From assembly GCA_965240325.2 (NCBI GenBank), contig OZ251225.1:3162001-3226000 (forward strand): a DNA stretch of 64,000 nt, written 5' to 3'. Shown one piece after another: positions 21,422 through 64,000 of the stretch. Made by a program: the position numbers and the translations under genes. Below the pieces are notes generated by a model that was given only the letters and a program-made list of their open reading frames with translations, was not told the origin of the DNA and did no database searches. How positions within the stretch are numbered: the stretch's first letter is position 1; each line of letters opens with the position of its first letter. The stretch is from Rebecca billardiae RCC1528 (Eukaryota > Protista > Haptophyta).

Positions 21422-21453
21422 CGTGCGGACAAAAGAGGGTCACACCGTTGTGG

Positions 21454-22575
21454 CAAGGGGAGTCAGGGTACAGCACGTCCAGTTGGGCTGCAGCTGGAGC
21501 TTGGGTCCAAAAGCTTCCCGCGGCGCAGCGGCACTCGCCGCCGCCGCCGCCGTCGAGGGGCGGTTGTGGCGCGCACGGCGTGAGCCACTGCGGGCGCTGA
21601 GGTGCGCGCGACGGCGGCGCGCCCGGCGGCGCTGCTGTAGGAGGCCTCTGCCCTCCTCTCTGCCCCGCGCGCTTCGCTCGTCGTCGCCGTCTCCGCGCCT
21701 GCGACTCAGCGCGCACGCGAGCGCCGCACCGCCCGGCCGCCGGGGCAATCTCAGCCGTGACTGCGCATGTGCGTCGCGACCTGGTCGGCCCAGCGCGCGA
21801 GGCGCGTGTGGGCGAGGTAGGGCCAGTGTGGCCGCGCGCCATGCCGCCTCAAGTAAGCCCATCAGAGCGTACAACAGGGAACTGAGCACATGTGTCTGGT
21901 TGCCCGCTTGGACTGTGGTGAGTGTTCAAGCAATGCACGGGCCATCGTCGAGGCGATCTCGAGGCACTCAGTCAAAACGTCAGTTCAGCGCGCAGACGAC
22001 CTGGGCGAGAGTCGCTGACAATGCATGACTCGCATGATCACAAAAGGCTCTGCAACTATCGCGTCTGTACGCCTACTGCCTCGATCGTGCACACTGACGT
22101 CTGCGCTTGCGTGCCGCATTGGTTGTCAACGTTGTCGACAGAGGTGCAAGGCCGGCGACATGCCCACCGGCGCAAGGTCGAGGCGGCATGGCGCGCGGCC
22201 ACACTGGCCCTGCCTCGCCCGCACGCGCCTCGCGCGCTGGGCCGACCAGGTCGCGACGCACATGCGCAGTCACGGCTGAGATTGCCCCGGCTGCCGGGCG
22301 GTGCGGCGATCGCGTGCGCGCTGGTCGCAGGCGCGGAGACGGCGACGACGAGCGAAGCGCGCGGGGCAGAGAGGAGGGCAGTGGTCTCCTACAGCAGCGC
22401 CGCCGGGCGCGCCGCCGTCGCGCGCACCTCAGCGCCCGCAGCGGCTCACGCCGTGCGCGCCACAACCGCCCATCGACGGCGGCGGCGGCGGCGAGTGCCG
22501 CTGCGCGGCGGGAAGCTTTTGGACCCAAGCTCCAGCTGCAGCCCAACTGGACGTGCTGTACCCTGACTCCCCTTG
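21454..22575. mobile_element. Foldback element with ~400-bp TIRs and 7-bp TSD (P/Galileo-like)
   Basis: 21454-21850 is a near-identical reverse complement of 22180-22575. Termini are CAAGGGG...CCCCTTG, with GTTGTGG at 21447-21453 and 22576-22582. Confidence 0.88.
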
Positions 22576-22642
22576 GTTGTGGCGTTGTCCGAGGACTGCT
22601 CCGAGCAAGCACTGGCCCGTACGCACGCCCACTGAATGTGAA

Positions 22643-56405: not shown

Positions 56406-56705
56406 CGCAGCCCCTGCAGCCGCCCCCGCCGCCGCCGCAAGCCGCTGACCTGCACGCCTTCAGGTCCGCCGAGCGATGGCCGACGACGGCGACGACACGC
56501 GCGCCCAAGTGCCCACACCTCATTCCGGGGCTGGGCGACCTGTCGGGAAGTCCGGGGGGTGGGGAAGGGGAGTGGGGGCGCATACACGGCAAGCCCGTCG
56601 TGGCGACGCCATTGCTGCGTCGCGCGTGCCCTCCCGGGCGGCGGGCTCTGGCCGCCGGGCGGGCTCATCATACGCGCGCCGCACGGCTGCTCTTGAGTGG
56701 TGACG

Positions 56706-58016
56706 ATGGGTGCCGGCACGATCCTCGAGCGCATCAAGGAGATCGAGAACGAGATCGCGCGCACGCAGAAGAACAAGGCAACGACGACGCACTTGGGCTC
56801 CCTGCGTGCAAAGCTGTGCAAGCTGCGGCGCGAGCTGCAGGAGCCCGCGGGTGGCGACAAGGGCGGCGCCAGTGACGGCTTCGAGGTGAGCAAGTCGGGC
56901 GACGCGCGCGTCGCGCTGATCGGCTTCCCGTCCGTGGGAAAGTCGACCATCCTCTCCGAGATGACCTCGACCAAGTCGGAGACGGCCGCGTACGAGTTCA
57001 CGACGCTCACGTGCATCCCCGGCGTGCTTCACCACAAGGGCTGCCGCATCCAGGTGCTCGACCTCCCAGGGATCATCGAGGGCGCGTCTGAGGGCAAGGG
57101 GCGGGGACGGCAGGTCATTGCCGTCGCCAAGTCCGCCGACATGGTGCTGATGGTGCTCGACGCCGCGTCGGGCCACTCGGAGCACCAGCGGATGCTGCTC
57201 GAGCGCGAGCTGGAGAACTGCGGGCTGCGGCTGAACAAGCGACCGCCCAACATCTACTTCAAGCGGAAGGCCACCGGCGGCGTCTCGGTCAACTTCACGT
57301 GCAAGGCGCCCTCGATCACCGAGAAGGACATCAACGACGTGCTGTACGAGTACCGCATCCACAACGCAGAGATCCTCGTGCGCGAGGACCTCACCGTCGA
57401 CGACTTCTGCGACGTGATCGAAGGGAACCGGCACTACGTCAAGTGCCTCTACGTGTACAACAAGATCGTGCGCGCCCACGCGCGCGCGCCCTCCCGCGCG
57501 CTCCGCTTGCCGCGCCCCCAACACGGCCCTCGCACGCGCCCGGCGGCCGGCACGCAGGACATGACGTGCATCGAGGAGGTGGAGCGCATCTGCTCGCAGC
57601 CGCACTGCACGGTGCTCTCCACGCTGCTCAAGCTCAACTACGACATGTTCATGGACAAGATCTGGGAGTACCTCGAGCTCGTGCGCGTGTACACGAAGAA
57701 GCGCGGCCAGCCGCCAGACCTGAGCGACCCTCTCGTGCTCACGCGCGGCCGGCACGGGATCACGGTGGAGGCGGCGTGCATGCAGCTGCACAAGTCGCTC
57801 GTGGAGAACCACGACTACACGTTCGTGTGGGGGCGATCGGTGAAGCACTCGCCCCAGCGCTGCGGGCTCATCCACACCCTCTCGGACGAGGACGTCGTGC
57901 AGATCATGCAGAAGCGCGTGCAGTCCAAGGACACCGATCCGTTCAACAAGTCGCAGGCGACGGGCTCGCAGTCCAAGCAGCAGCTGAAAAAGGCGAAAAA
58001 GCCGCTCAAGACATGA
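56706..58016 (+). CDS. DRG2: Developmentally regulated GTP-binding protein (DRG2-like); intron 57468-57557
   Basis: EIARTQKNKAT, GFEVSKSGDARVALIGFPSVGKS, YEFTTLT, DLPGIIEGA, YNKI|D and a TGS domain. Confidence 0.93.
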   Translation: MGAGTILERIKEIENEIARTQKNKATTTHLGSLRAKLCKLRRELQEPAGGDKGGASDGFEVSKSGDARVALIGFPSVGKSTILSEMTSTKSETAAYEFTTLTCIPGVLHHKGCRIQVLDLPGIIEGASEGKGRGRQVIAVAKSADMVLMVLDAASGHSEHQRMLLERELENCGLRLNKRPPNIYFKRKATGGVSVNFTCKAPSITEKDINDVLYEYRIHNAEILVREDLTVDDFCDVIEGNRHYVKCLYVYNKIVRAHARAPSRALRLPRPQHGPRTRPAAGTQDMTCIEEVERICSQPHCTVLSTLLKLNYDMFMDKIWEYLELVRVYTKKRGQPPDLSDPLVLTRGRHGITVEAACMQLHKSLVENHDYTFVWGRSVKHSPQRCGLIHTLSDEDVVQIMQKRVQSKDTDPFNKSQATGSQSKQQLKKAKKPLKT

Positions 58017-58537: not shown

Positions 58538-59443
58538 TCATCCGGGCTGCCGCGCCTTCGCGCGTCGCGCGTGCGATTTAGCCATTAGCCAGGCGCGGCA
58601 GCGCGGCACTCTTCTGCAAGGCCCACCGAGGCGCCAGCGAGGCGCGCCGGCGAGTGAGGCGCGCGTCGATGCAGTCGTCGCTGCGCACGGCCGCTCGGGC
58701 ACGGCGGCACGGCAACGGCACGCACCGATCACGCCGTGCGTGCGCGCGCCGGCCATCGACGCGTGGTAGTCGTGCAGTAACTGCAGCTCCGTGGGGTTTT
58801 CCGCACGTCGTGCGCGCTGCTGCCGCCGGACGCCCAGATGGCGCGCGACCGCGTCGGTCGCGGCGGCCTCGCGCGCCGCGCGCGGGGCGGCTCGACGCGC
58901 GGCGTGACCCTCGCGGCGCTCCGCGTTGCGCGCCTCGTCCACGCCGTTCAGCGTGCTCGCCAGCCGCGCGCGCAGCTGCGCGAGGCACGCGTCGAGCGCT
59001 GCCGGCGTCTCGCAGTTTGGGTGCGAGGCCGCGGGCGCGCGCGCGCCGGGGCGCGTGGCCTCGTGCGGGTGCACGGCGAGGCGCGCCAGGTCCACAAACG
59101 GCTCGTCGCGCAGTTCCAGCGCACGCAGCCCGGCGACGCGCGCGTCCCAGCGCGCGACGTGTTTGGACAGCGCGTCGTTGGCGAATTGCGCGCACGCCGC
59201 CGCGCTCCGCCTCCCCACAAACGGCTCGTCGCGCAGTTCCAGCGCACGCAGCCCGGCGACGCGCGCGTCCCAGCGCGCGACGTGTTTGGACAGCGCGTCG
59301 TTGGCGAATTGCGCGCACGCCGCCGCGCTCCGCCTCCGCATCTGCACGCCACACGCCGCGTAGACCACGAACGAATCTATCCAGCTCGTGCACGACATCG
59401 TCAGCCGACGTGGCCATGTCGGGCCGACGGCGGCCAAAGTCAC
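58538..59443 (-). other. Uncharacterised coding-like segment with a perfect in-frame 123-bp tandem duplication (59092-59214, 59215-59337)
   Basis: The 41-aa duplication is visible in the ORF. No recognisable domain. Upstream ~45-bp direct repeats lie at 59523-59617. Confidence 0.35.
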
Positions 59444-59835: not shown

Positions 59836-60932
59836 AGGGGGTCGCTCGCTAAGCCCCACCCGCTCCGGCCAGCATGGCTGCCTGGCCGGCGGCGGCGTGT
59901 TCAAGCGAGCCGTAGGCCGGGAATCCACGCGCTGGCGGTGCGGTTTTGGCGGCGCAGGGGGCCTCACAGGTCATCTGCAGGTATGCTCAGAGCCTTAGGA
60001 CAGCTTGGTGGCCCGCAATCCCGGCTCCTTGTCGCTGCTTGCCGACTGCAAGCGATCACGCGTCGACCGTGCGGTCCCGCGTTGCACGCGGCCCAACGTA
60101 GGGTGCTGCACATGCCAGCAGATGGTGAAGGGGGGTCGCCCGCCACGCAGACGTCCTCGGAGAGGACGTCGACCCCCGTACGTCGCCTTGATTGGCGTTG
60201 TCCCGCAAGGAGTCGCTAAAGGCCTGCTGCCCAGGGAGACACGGACAATGTGAAGTTCTGGCGCTACCATCGGCGACGGCTTCATGGGCGGTGACAGTTG
60301 GCGGGCGTCAATCTCGCCTGCCTGAGCTGTGTGCGTCTCTTATTCTTAGTAAACTGTAATCTCGCCTGCCTGAGCTGTGTGCGTCTCTTATTCTTAGTAA
60401 ACTGTAGGCCAAAAGTCGAGATAACATTTTGAAATGCCTATGGTTGTTCGTATGTCATTGCATTAGGAAGCACGCAAGCCTGGGCTGGAGAGGTCGGGAT
60501 CGAGACGACGCACGGGGGTCGACGTCCTCTCCGAGGACGTCTGCGTGGCGGGCGACCCCCCTTCACCATCTGCTAGCATGTGCAGCACCCTACGTTGGGC
60601 CGCGTGCACGCGGGATTGCACGGTCGACGCGTGATCGCTTGCAGTCGGCAAGCAGCGACAAGGAGCCTGGGGTTGCGGGCCACCAAGCTGTCCTAAGGCT
60701 CTGAGCATACCTGCAGGCGACCCGCGAGGCCACCTGCGCCGCCAAAACCGCACCGCCAGCGCGTGGATTCCCGGCTTACGGCTCGCTTGAGCACGCCGCC
60801 GCCGGCCAGGCAGCCATGCTGGCCGGAGCGGGTGGGGCTTACCGGCTTATGGTGACAGTTGGCGGGCGTCAATCTCGCCTGCCTGAGCTGTGTGCGTCTC
60901 TTATTCTTAGTAAACTGTAGCGAGCGACCCCT
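59836..60932. repeat. Foldback-like ~1.1-kb structure: inverted arms 59836-60192 / 60499-60932 with nested direct repeats
   Basis: The arms are diverged reverse complements. A 48-bp unit is tandem at 60310-60405 and is copied again, with extra flank, inside the right arm (60851-60919). Confidence 0.85.
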
Positions 60933-60977: not shown

Positions 60978-62921
60978 ATGGCAGTTGTGGGCGCTTGGGT
61001 GCAGTTGCCCAGCTGGGCGCGCGCAGCGCCGAGTGACGCGGAGGTCGGAGCTCGCCGGCGCGTGCACGCGGCCTTCGCGTCGGCTGCGGACGCTAAGCGC
61101 CTCTCGCTTGCCCGCCTCGACCTGACCGAGATCCCCGAGTCAGCGGCTGCCGCGCTCGAGCGCGCAGCTCTGAGCGGCCGCGCCGTGCGCGAGCTCGACC
61201 TGGCGTGCAACACCCTCGGCCACGACGCACCGCTCATGCTCACGGGGGTAGCGTATGCGAAGCTGACCGCGCTCATCCTCGCGGGCAATGGGCTCTCGGC
61301 GCGCGCGCTCAACCGATGCCAGCTTCCTGCAGGCTTGCTGGTGCTCGATATCTCGGCGAATCAGATCGAAGCGCTGCCGCCCTCAGTCGTGCGGCTGGGC
61401 GGGCTCGTGCGGCTCAGCGTCGCGCGCAACCGGCTCCGTGCGCTCCCACTGTCGCTCGGCGCGCTCCTGCCCGCGCTCGCCGAGCTCGACCTGAGCCACA
61501 ACGACCTGCGCGCCGCGTCGGCCGATCGATTCGGCAGGGCGCCGCTGCCGTCTCTGCAGCTGCTCCGCATGCGCGCGTGCGGGCTCGAGGCGTGGGAGCT
61601 CGACGCGCAGATGCTGCCGGCGGTGCGCACGCTCGATCTCTCGGACAACGCGCTCTCCGAGCCCTCGGCCGCGCTCTGCTCGCTGCTCTCGCTGCGCGTG
61701 CTGCGGCTCGCGCACAACGCGCTCACGTCGCTTCTGGCGCCGCTCGTGGCCTCGCACCGGCGTGCGTGGGTGCCGCGCGGGCTGCACGAGCTCGAGGGGC
61801 TGCGCGAGCTGTCGATCGCGCAGAATCGGGTGCGCGAGCTGCCGCCGCCGTTCGTCGCGGGCCTCGCGCCGCTGCTGCGCGACCTCGACGTGCGCTGCAA
61901 CCCGCTCTGCGCCGACGCGCAGCACGCCCTTGCTCGGCTGATGCACGCGCGCCCACCGGCTGCGGCCGAGGGCGCGGCCGAGGCAGCGCTGGCGCCGCGC
62001 GTGCGCATGAGTGCCGTGCGGCGCGTGGCGCCGCGGCTGCTGGTGGGCGACCCGTCCGTCGCGTGGGACGAGCGCACGCTCAAGGCCCTCGGCGTCACCC
62101 ACATTGTCACCGTCGGCGAGCCATCCGAGCTGGGCGCACTCACGACGCACGCGCGGCCGGTGCGGGCGGGCGACCCGCGCGTCGCGCCCGCCCTCGCCGT
62201 GCTCGGCCTCGGCGGCCTCGCGCCCGACGAGACGGTGGACGCGGCCGCCGCACGCGCCGCGTACCTCCGCGCGGCTCGCGAGCTGCACCCCGACGCACTG
62301 CCCGCCGGCGCGCCCGACGAGACGCGCCGCCGCGCCGAGGAGCGCTTCTCGCACGCGCGCGAGGCGTATGCGCAGCTGTGCGACGCAGGCCGCGCGGAGG
62401 CGGTGGAGCTGCCGCGCTTCGGTGAGTTTGCGTACCACGTGTGCCCGCTCGGCGCCGGGGCGGGCGAGGAGAGCGCGGTGGGCGGCGACGAGGGCGGCGC
62501 GCGCGCGCTCACGGTCCGCGCGCTCGGCGAGGCCAGCGCCTTTATCCACGCGGCGCGCACCGCGCCCCTCGCCACTGTTGTGCTCGTGCACGCGGCGGCG
62601 GGCTGGGGCCGCGCCGCAGCCGTCGCCGCCGCGTACGCGCTCACGGCGCTGGGTCGGCCGTTGGGGGAGGCGCTTGCGCTCTGCGCGCCGCCAGCCACGG
62701 CCAATGTCGTCAGCGCGGGCTCGGAGGACGACGGCCCGGTGGCTCTCCCGCCCCGCGTGCGCGCCGCCCTTGTCGAGCTCGAGCGCGCCGTGAAGCAGCA
62801 CAGCCGACGCGTGCACGTGCACGTGGAGCCCGGCGCGCGCGTCGCCGACACCGCAGACTCCCGCTCGGCGTCGGGCTCGACGCAGGCAGGCGAGGAGGGG
62901 GTCACGTTCGGCCTCAACTGA
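60978..62921 (+). CDS. LRR protein with C-terminal dual-specificity pseudophosphatase containing an inserted J-domain
   Basis: LxxLxLxxN repeats; DSP N-part (VAPRLLVGD..LKALGVTHIVTV); J-domain (AYLRAARELHPD..AEERF..AREAYAQLCD); DSP C-part with VLVHAAAGWGRA. Confidence 0.85.
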   Translation: MAVVGAWVQLPSWARAAPSDAEVGARRRVHAAFASAADAKRLSLARLDLTEIPESAAAALERAALSGRAVRELDLACNTLGHDAPLMLTGVAYAKLTALILAGNGLSARALNRCQLPAGLLVLDISANQIEALPPSVVRLGGLVRLSVARNRLRALPLSLGALLPALAELDLSHNDLRAASADRFGRAPLPSLQLLRMRACGLEAWELDAQMLPAVRTLDLSDNALSEPSAALCSLLSLRVLRLAHNALTSLLAPLVASHRRAWVPRGLHELEGLRELSIAQNRVRELPPPFVAGLAPLLRDLDVRCNPLCADAQHALARLMHARPPAAAEGAAEAALAPRVRMSAVRRVAPRLLVGDPSVAWDERTLKALGVTHIVTVGEPSELGALTTHARPVRAGDPRVAPALAVLGLGGLAPDETVDAAAARAAYLRAARELHPDALPAGAPDETRRRAEERFSHAREAYAQLCDAGRAEAVELPRFGEFAYHVCPLGAGAGEESAVGGDEGGARALTVRALGEASAFIHAARTAPLATVVLVHAAAGWGRAAAVAAAYALTALGRPLGEALALCAPPATANVVSAGSEDDGPVALPPRVRAALVELERAVKQHSRRVHVHVEPGARVADTADSRSASGSTQAGEEGVTFGLN

Positions 62922-64000
62922 TTCCTCAGACGATGCGGCGTAGCTTGCTGCTGAGCATGCGCGACCGACGAGTAGCACCGCGTCGTCGTCGGAGGCGCCG
63001 ATCTCGGATCGGATCGTCTGTCAACGAGGCCCACGGCCGGGTTCTGCGAGACCGGCGGCGAGCAATAAATGATGACAGAAATGTGTCGTCTGCTGAGTGA
63101 TGAAAGTCTGCACGACGAGTGAATCATAAGTGTATTGAGTGTACTTCGCCCATCTGGCATCAACGTCGCCGGTGTCGGTGAGTAAGTATTATATAATAAT
63201 AAGCAGAATAATAATAGCTAATAATAATACAAGCTATATATATACATATACATACATACATACATACTACAGTGGGCTGGTCCCACTGGCGGAGCAGAAA
63301 TTCAAAACTATCTGACGATCGGCGCGGTCTCAGCGACTCGGAACAAACGGGGTGCGACAGACTAGCGCCGGCGGGGTATGCGCCGGCGTCTGAGCTCACC
63401 AGCGCGACTTCAGCAAAGCGCGCGGACGAAAATCAGCTCTCCGGGAGGGCCCCTGGCCTGCGCGGGGTCGCGGTCGCGGCGCCGGGCGCGGGGATGCTGT
63501 CAGCTTCCGAGCCCGTACAGCTCGTCGCGCGCGCTCGGGGTGCGCGAGGCGACGCGGTACGACGGTGGCGTGGACCACCACCTCACGCCTCGCTGCGTCG
63601 TCAGCGTGTACAGCCCACCGCTGCCACTAGCGCCAATGTGAATGGCACTGCTCGGAACACAGCTCGATGCGTCGCGCGTTGTCGTTTGCGTCGACTCGTC
63701 GCTCGGCCGGAGGTGCAGCTGACGCGCTTGCCGAAGCAGCACCGCAGACCCCGCTCGATGGTGTGCGCGGCGTGAAGTTCGCACCGAACGTCTTCTTGTG
63801 GCGAGATGCGCACCGCCCGCCGCAGCGCCCGCCGCTGCCGAGCCGGCCGCCGCTGCGGCCGCCGCGCCGGCTGCCGCCGCCGCGACCGCCGTCGCTGCGC
63901 CATCAGCCGGCCCGGTGCTGCCGCACTCGCCGGGCGACCCCTCGAAGATGCGCGCAGCGTGACGTGCGCGGCGAGTAACTCCTCGTCGCGAGATGCGCTC

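Follow-up and report, generated by a model that had tools for sequence, protein, structure and literature searches.

A haptophyte protein family predicted to nest a J-domain within a catalytically dead dual-specificity phosphatase fold behind a leucine-rich repeat array

In a 64,000-nucleotide stretch of the genome of the haptophyte Rebecca billardiae RCC1528 (contig OZ251225.1, positions 3,162,001 to 3,226,000; hereafter the window, to whose numbering all nucleotide coordinates below refer), we identified a gene on the forward strand, at 60978-62921, whose predicted product combines an N-terminal leucine-rich repeat (LRR) array with a dual-specificity phosphatase (DSP) fold that has lost its nucleophilic cysteine and is itself interrupted by a J-domain. 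What is new in this protein is the nesting of a J-domain in a dead DSP behind an LRR array; LRR-DSPs, Cys-less DSPs and the tandem pairing of a dead protein tyrosine phosphatase (PTP) fold with a J-domain were already known. As the J-domain is the element constrained throughout the family while the phosphatase chemistry is gone, we propose that the protein is probably a class-C (type III) J-domain co-chaperone without phosphatase activity, in which the LRR array and the pseudophosphatase choose the site of action or the client.

An earlier reading of the window made from its letters alone (the sequence-only reading) held that the DSP fold is split after a GVTHIVTV strand (residues 374-381) by a complete J-domain with an intact His-Pro-Asp (HPD) motif, and several comparisons bear this out. 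When the C-terminal part of the protein was compared with the PDB using phmmer, DUSP26 and DUSP3 were matched by two separate pieces of it (residues 9-53 and 179-223), and the J-domain of Escherichia coli DnaJ was matched at residues 78-156, between the two. A profile built from the C-terminal parts of seven family members recovered DUSP26 (E 7e-14) and DUSP19 (E 2e-12), the DUSP matches again being split between profile positions 9-43 and 192-285, with J-domains matching at positions 80-133 between them (E 5e-6). A further profile restricted to the J segments of six members matched a DNAJB protein (E 9.4e-7) and E. coli DnaJ (E 2e-6), with J-domains accounting for nearly all of the 60 PDB matches listed, and alignment of the J segment to the stand-alone J protein P0021 with hhalign gave a probability of 95.8%. 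We then combined the family in one alignment with the canonical DSPs and J proteins returned by phmmer: the gap in the canonical DSPs coincides exactly with the J segment, their alignment picking up again at the next strand, the J proteins align to the insert only, and at the general-acid site the canonical DSPs carry D or DD, where the family has a variable Gly/Ala-rich loop. The phmmer alignment places the start of the insertion directly after residues 64-74 of VHR/DUSP3, a segment that we take to be the 'variable insert' of that enzyme, which adjoins or lines the substrate groove.

The arrangement can be followed along the forward strand. The N-terminal half of the DSP fold comprises residues 345-387 (62010-62138), with strands β1-β3 including GVTHIVTV (modelled at 9-13, 16-19 and 35-41 of the C-terminal part), and aligns with positions 24-58 of DUSP26 and 30-74 of DUSP3. 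The insert that follows the GVTHIVTV strand is about 100 residues long and forms the nested J-domain, assigned by Pfam, family profile, hhalign and model to residues 396-478 (62163-62411) and comprising helix I, helix II, the HPD loop and helices III/IV; the HPD tripeptide itself is residues 437-439 (62286-62294), encoded by CAC CCC GAC. The DSP fold is re-entered through a return strand at residues 479-490 (62412-62447; model strand 146-151), which aligns with the Y-x-x-hydrophobic strand of canonical DSPs and is the equivalent of the strand ahead of the general-acid Asp in active enzymes. The position of the general-acid (D) loop is taken by a variable Gly/Ala/acidic loop, residues 491-512 (62448-62513), which varies in length between about 10 and about 100 residues in the relatives, has no conserved Asp and shows a mean identity of 0.28; its GC content at third codon positions (GC3) of 0.946 is consistent with coding. 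The C-terminal half of the fold, residues 513-612 (62514-62813), holds the P-loop and the helices that follow it and is supported by a 35.8-bit match of the family profile to DUSP26 92-180 and by structure superposition. Within it lies the degenerate P-loop HAAAGWGR at residues 538-545 (62589-62612), in which the codon GCG places Ala539 at the position of the nucleophilic Cys, Arg545 is kept, and the next residue is Ala in place of the Ser/Thr of active and STYX P-loops. The Cys-to-Ala change had already been noted in the sequence-only reading, and the separately assembled Logan contig L005 (ERR14847152) is identical to the window over both the J and the P-loop codons. The LRR array that precedes the DSP fold (about residues 40-316, 61095-61925), likewise named in the sequence-only reading, is a solid Pfam match (LRR_8, 61.8 bits; LRR_4, 60.6 bits) of the SHOC2/LRRD1 type, with PDB matches to LRRD1 (3.6e-24) and SHOC2 (3e-22); it includes an R-x-W-V-P island that is invariant and, at its end, an LD-x-RCNPL cap.

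The search for the same nested architecture in other proteins, which the sequence-only reading had recommended, yielded 15 relatives with the same order of parts, for a family of 16 members in total. A word search with the C-terminal part of the window protein returned the protein itself and nothing further; an exhaustive phmmer search recovered the full-length relatives P0002 and P0003, with about 50% identity over the whole C-terminal part, together with the more distant P0010 and fragments, and two further word searches added eleven more members. The five relatives that carry organism names come from pavlovophyte and prymnesiophyte haptophytes, among them Diacronema lutheri KAG8459093.1, Pavlovales sp. 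CCMP2436 KAJ1616227.1, Prymnesium parvum KAL1520384.1 and an MMETSP transcript, which makes the window's own genome most likely that of a haptophyte of pavlovophyte type. Database names of the orthologues are 'J domain-containing protein' (the UniProt name of KAG8459093.1 and KAL1520384.1) or 'hypothetical', with no member described as a phosphatase; the host DSP fold has been missed by the databases because its scores lie under the family cut-offs. Pfam DnaJ is matched in 13 of the 16 members (E <= 0.01), and Pfam DSPc in only the four pavlovophyte-type members.

Across these 16 proteins, which sample both haptophyte clades, the HPD is invariant, as are R426, A428, A433, F457, A463 and Y464 at canonical positions of helices II and III. 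Invariance extends to P479 and Y486 of the return strand, to D358, S360 and W363 in the N-terminal half of the DSP fold, and to many positions of the LRR array. The P-loop Cys is absent from every member. The P-loop Arg is kept in five, namely the four pavlovophyte-type proteins (the window protein being one) and a single Prymnesium protein; the remaining prymnesiophyte P-loops contain insertions and have no conserved polar residue. Among the pavlovophyte proteins, by contrast with the other segments compared, conservation peaks in the P-loop segment, with a mean pairwise identity of 0.72.

Modelling points to the same architecture. An AlphaFold (AF2) model of the C-terminal part reached a mean predicted local distance difference test (pLDDT) of 82.5 and a predicted template modelling score of 0.68, from the combined alignment, whose seeding with canonical DSPs and J proteins may favour those folds. 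In this model the J helices span 65-70, 84-98 and 109-138 with pLDDT 92-97, the HPD lies between the last two, and helices III and IV are drawn as one long helix. The DSP fold was recovered, the model superposing on DUSP14 with Z 17.8 and a root-mean-square deviation (rmsd) of 2.3 Å over 142 residues, a span from model residue 7 to 270 that skips the roughly 100-residue insert. DUSP28 (Z 17.8), MKP-2 (within Z 16.8-17.8), STYX (2r0b, Z 16.8) and the Entamoeba histolytica LRR-phosphatase 3emu (Z 16.8, rmsd 2.3 Å, 142 residues) were matched comparably, and Foldseek template modelling scores normalised to the target were about 0.8. The best matches are VH1-type DSPs, at Z about 17, against Z 13.5 for PTEN. 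Taken with the profile results, which are free of the caveat on seeding, the model indicates that the DSP alpha/beta fold is present.

Based on these observations, the function best supported by sequence conservation and modelling is that of an Hsp70 recruiter. In the mechanism we propose, the LRR solenoid and the dead phosphatase body would serve as a targeting or client-binding module, and the HPD loop and basic helix II of the J-domain would dock ATP-bound cytosolic Hsp70 and set off hydrolysis of the nucleotide. Hsp70 would thereby be loaded onto the cargo held by the LRR and pseudo-DSP parts, and the complex concerned would be remodelled or disassembled; no dephosphorylation by the protein itself would be involved. 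In the pavlovophyte clade, including this copy, the Cys-less P-loop with its Arg545 may in addition cradle a phosphate-bearing or other anionic ligand, a property that would not be family-wide. A predicted complex of the C-terminal module with the genome's own EEVD-ending cytosolic Hsp70 (ORF L021:1468-3435) and ATP gave interaction prediction scores from aligned errors (ipSAE) of 0.52, 0.47 and 0.52 in three runs, the best control scoring 0.02; the runs share at least 38% of their contacts, with a partner pLDDT of at least 71. Of 78 solved complexes, 51 reach the mark applied to such predictions, as do 2 of 108 mismatched pairs; the verdict for this pair was 'weak support'.

A number of results weigh against this interpretation. 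The complex scores sit in the weak band; values of at most 0.60 are found for only 5 of the 78 solved complexes and for all 4 passing mismatches (of 180, harder ones counted), and the pass may reflect likeness rather than binding because a J-domain/Hsp70 complex has already been solved. An AF2 model from the single sequence was poor, with pLDDT 42. In the Pfam scan of the full protein, the LRR array stood firm, but DnaJ (22.5 bits against a cut-off of 27.8) and DSPc (20.6 bits against 33.5) both remained below threshold. The J segment scanned alone rose to 27.3 bits, just under the DnaJ cut-off, and three orthologous J segments exceed it with 31.2, 30.0 and 28.8 bits. We nevertheless regard the J and DSP matches as more than chance, on the strength of the two-piece phmmer matches, the family profiles and the superposition of the model.

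The status of the gene itself deserves consideration in a region of 72-79% GC. Read from the sequence, 60978-62921 is a single uninterrupted open reading frame (ORF) of 647 codons plus stop. Length alone is uninformative here, because the genome yields long spurious ORFs in several frames, and antisense ORFs of 600 and 531 residues overlap the gene. However, from Met1 to its last residue the ORF is colinear with orthologues of 700-747 residues, and uninterrupted orthologue ORFs are present on genomic contigs of other species, with an MMETSP transcript fragment also among the relatives. GC3 is 0.88-0.95 in every segment of the ORF, as against 0.53-0.64 at second codon positions, and total GC falls to 0.52-0.62 in the flanks; codon bias is strongest in the J segment, where GC3 is 0.945 and the pattern is seen in the forward frame only. 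The composition accordingly marks the forward frame as the coding frame and supports coding throughout. We infer from conservation and codon bias that the gene is complete and intronless. It is single-copy in its own genome (72 Mb, 41 contigs), in which a paralogue search found none; a crude, non-exhaustive motif scan of 7 long ORFs at other DSP loci of the genome turned up active HCx5R sites and no LRR-DSP or HPD-bearing paralogue. By these sequence comparisons the gene is real, conserved and found so far only in haptophytes. The contig L005 differs from the window at two places in the Ala-rich linker that joins the LRR and DSP parts: an in-frame 6-nucleotide insertion (GAGGCG) follows 61979, and a single base is substituted at 61992. 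We considered it as a possible transcript and rejected it as such: it is a chimera of this gene with C14:2311994-2312427, which confirms the sequence only and is silent on transcript ends.

Several alternative explanations were weighed against the co-chaperone proposal. We consider it exceedingly improbable that the protein is an artefact, whether a chance ORF born of the GC-rich composition or an ORF whose J segment is an in-frame intron. The abundance of spurious ORFs in this genome, including the antisense pair over the gene, and the intron-like insert that the neighbouring ORF for a developmentally regulated GTP-binding protein (DRG) seems to hold in frame would favour it. Yet orthologues with identities of 30-50% can be aligned over the full length, their J segments conserved and in the same frame, the high GC3 of that segment is confined to this frame, and, on a reading by eye, the variable loop holds no plausible GT..AG pair of more than 15 nucleotides. 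It is also distinctly unlikely, in our estimation, that the J-like insert is inactive on Hsp70, its helical hairpin being kept for structure or for protein binding within a scaffold of LRRs and pseudophosphatase. The sub-threshold Pfam score of the window's J segment, the weak support from the complex prediction and the modelling of helices III and IV as one helix are all compatible with such an insert. Degenerate J-like domains, however, usually lose the HPD, which here is invariant in all 16 members and in both clades, together with the Arg of helix II and the Phe and Ala-Tyr of helix III.

The remaining alternatives concern the former active site. An active phosphatase with a non-canonical nucleophile was rejected: the Cys, the general acid and, in most members, the Arg are all missing. 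The sequence-only reading had ventured a phospho-sensing Hsp70 recruiter, and the two halves of that suggestion fare differently. Recruitment of Hsp70 accords with the invariant HPD and helix II/III residues and with the complex prediction, but phospho-sensing is not supported as a function of the whole family, because the Arg is present in only five of the 16 members, the prymnesiophyte P-loops are degenerate and the general-acid site is a variable loop. Confined to the pavlovophyte clade, it is possible. A STYX-like phospho-sensor, whose Cys-less P-loop would bind a phosphorylated protein or lipid head group while the adjacent J-domain recruits Hsp70 to the phospho-client, strikes us as rather unlikely. 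In its favour, three residues of the HCx5R cradle (His538, Gly542 and Arg545) are retained in the window protein, pavlovophytes conserve the P-loop segment better than any other part, the model matches STYX, and the J insert sits where VHR residues 64-74 and those beyond them align, presumably at the substrate groove. Conversely, 11 of the 16 members have lost the Arg, prymnesiophyte P-loops have acquired insertions and shed any conserved polar residue although their J-domain and LRR array stay conserved, and the Ser/Thr that should follow the Arg is Ala. A more elaborate possibility, which we judge to be a long shot, is a ligand-gated J-domain: the J-domain would lie in a loop at the edge of the groove of the former active site, binding of a phospho-protein or other anionic ligand in the pocket would reorient or unmask the HPD face, and Hsp70 would be recruited only to the bound (e.g. 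phosphorylated) form of an LRR-held client. If true, this would constitute a direct allosteric link from a phospho-signal to chaperone loading.

Comparison with characterized systems helps to place the family. LRR-DSP phosphatases, of which Dictyostelium MPL1 is one, are known from several lineages. Those of kinetoplastids and Entamoeba (3emu) share with the haptophyte proteins a single polypeptide in which an N-terminal array of SHOC2-like LRRs precedes a VH1-type DSP, a correspondence drawn from domain order; they differ in keeping HCx5R and having no J-domain, whereas the haptophyte family is without the Cys and the general acid and houses the J-domain inside the fold. In the kinetoplastid (TriTryp) LRR-DSPs, which likewise combine LRRs with a DSP, the LRRs were likened to those of SHOC2 by the authors (PMC2175518). 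STYX and MK-STYX resemble this copy in that their DSP fold has exchanged the nucleophilic Cys for another residue yet retains the Arg of the P-loop. This combination is found in the window protein and four other members and not in 11 of the 16, and STYX itself is a single domain without LRR or J-domain, while most haptophyte relatives have lost the Arg. Auxilin/GAK (DNAJC6/DNAJC26) pairs an inactive PTP-superfamily domain with a J-domain by which Hsp70 is brought to one particular assembly, and the auxilin J-domain is a weak match of our J profile (E 0.08-0.09). Its domains, however, are arranged in tandem (PTEN-like and C2 domains, a clathrin-binding region and a C-terminal J-domain), whereas the haptophyte family has a VH1-type DSP host, a nested J-domain and an extra LRR module. 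We found no sign of common descent between the two pairings, which appear to be of independent origin; the comparison with auxilin drawn in the sequence-only reading is apt as an analogy and reaches no further. As in class C J-domain proteins generally, the J-domain is the sole feature in common with DnaJ, there being neither a G/F region nor a zinc finger, and other domains give specificity. To our knowledge, J-domains otherwise lie at termini or between domains or transmembrane segments, as in Sec63 and RME-8. Our literature search retrieved no report of a J-domain inserted within another globular fold or within a DSP fold, nor of this family, in keeping with the unfamiliarity of the architecture at first reading; searches of the ESM Atlas by features and by shape returned plain DSP clusters only, none covering both domains.

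Beyond the core, the protein begins with a region (residues 1-45, 60978-61112) with a W-x-x-L-P-x-W-A motif conserved among pavlovophyte orthologues, within which its mean identity is 0.60; judged from the sequence, with no predictor run, a signal or transit peptide is not indicated, the N-terminus being conserved and free of a hydrophobic signal-like stretch. The C-terminal tail (residues 613-647, 62814-62918) ends in F-G-L-N, the tails of its pavlovophyte orthologues ending in F-S-L-N, and the model draws its last residues as a strand of low confidence. Family-wide, pavlovophyte members including the window protein end in F-S/G-L-N and prymnesiophyte members in F-V/A-G, neither being a Pfam match, and the prymnesiophyte proteins P0026-P0034 possess an extra conserved C-terminal module of about 60 residues (G-W-x-V-D ... 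V-L-x-x-P ... E-G-A-R). The J inserts of the pavlovophytes have in common with the stand-alone J proteins P0007, P0013, P0017 and P0021, one of which carries DUF4168, an extended post-HPD loop (L-P-x-G-x-P followed by a basic/acidic helix start), which is four residues shorter in prymnesiophyte members. This loop may hint at the type of J protein from which the insert was derived.

The genomic surroundings of the gene are rich in repeats. A foldback element at 59847-60844, with arms at 59847-60192 and 60499-60844 of about 350 nucleotides each that are 95-96% complementary, ends some 60-130 bp upstream of the gene's ATG; it is of the same kind as an element at 21447-22582, and many copies 95-98% identical to it occur on at least 7 other contigs. 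A short repeat of about 70 nucleotides, running from GGTGACAGTTGG to TAAACTGTA, is found at 60290-60406 and 60851-60919, that is, at the centre and the right edge of the foldback. More than 15 other loci carry copies of it with near-100% identity, so that it resembles a small mobile element of very recent origin. Further upstream, 56697-58016 on the forward strand is an ORF for a DRG-like product, whose Arg/Pro-rich stretch in mid-ORF looks, by eye and from the translation, like an in-frame intron read through. Between this gene and the foldback element lies a perfect tandem duplication of a 123-nucleotide unit (59092-59337) in a stretch of 75-78% GC, and directly 3' of the likely end of the gene an AT-rich microsatellite block of AATA and ATAC repeats (63200-63270) interrupts an otherwise 70% GC region.

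Haptophytes are ecologically important algae, Prymnesium among them, and practical consequences will be limited until a partner of the protein is found, as the family is known so far from haptophytes only. J-domain proteins decide where Hsp70 acts, and signalling complexes are organised by pseudophosphatases and LRR scaffolds; in this family a single chain unites the three, with one domain inserted into another and not fused to it in tandem. The family is thereby a natural setting in which to ask whether a J-domain can function from inside another fold, and whether the pocket of a dead phosphatase can direct or gate the recruitment of a chaperone.

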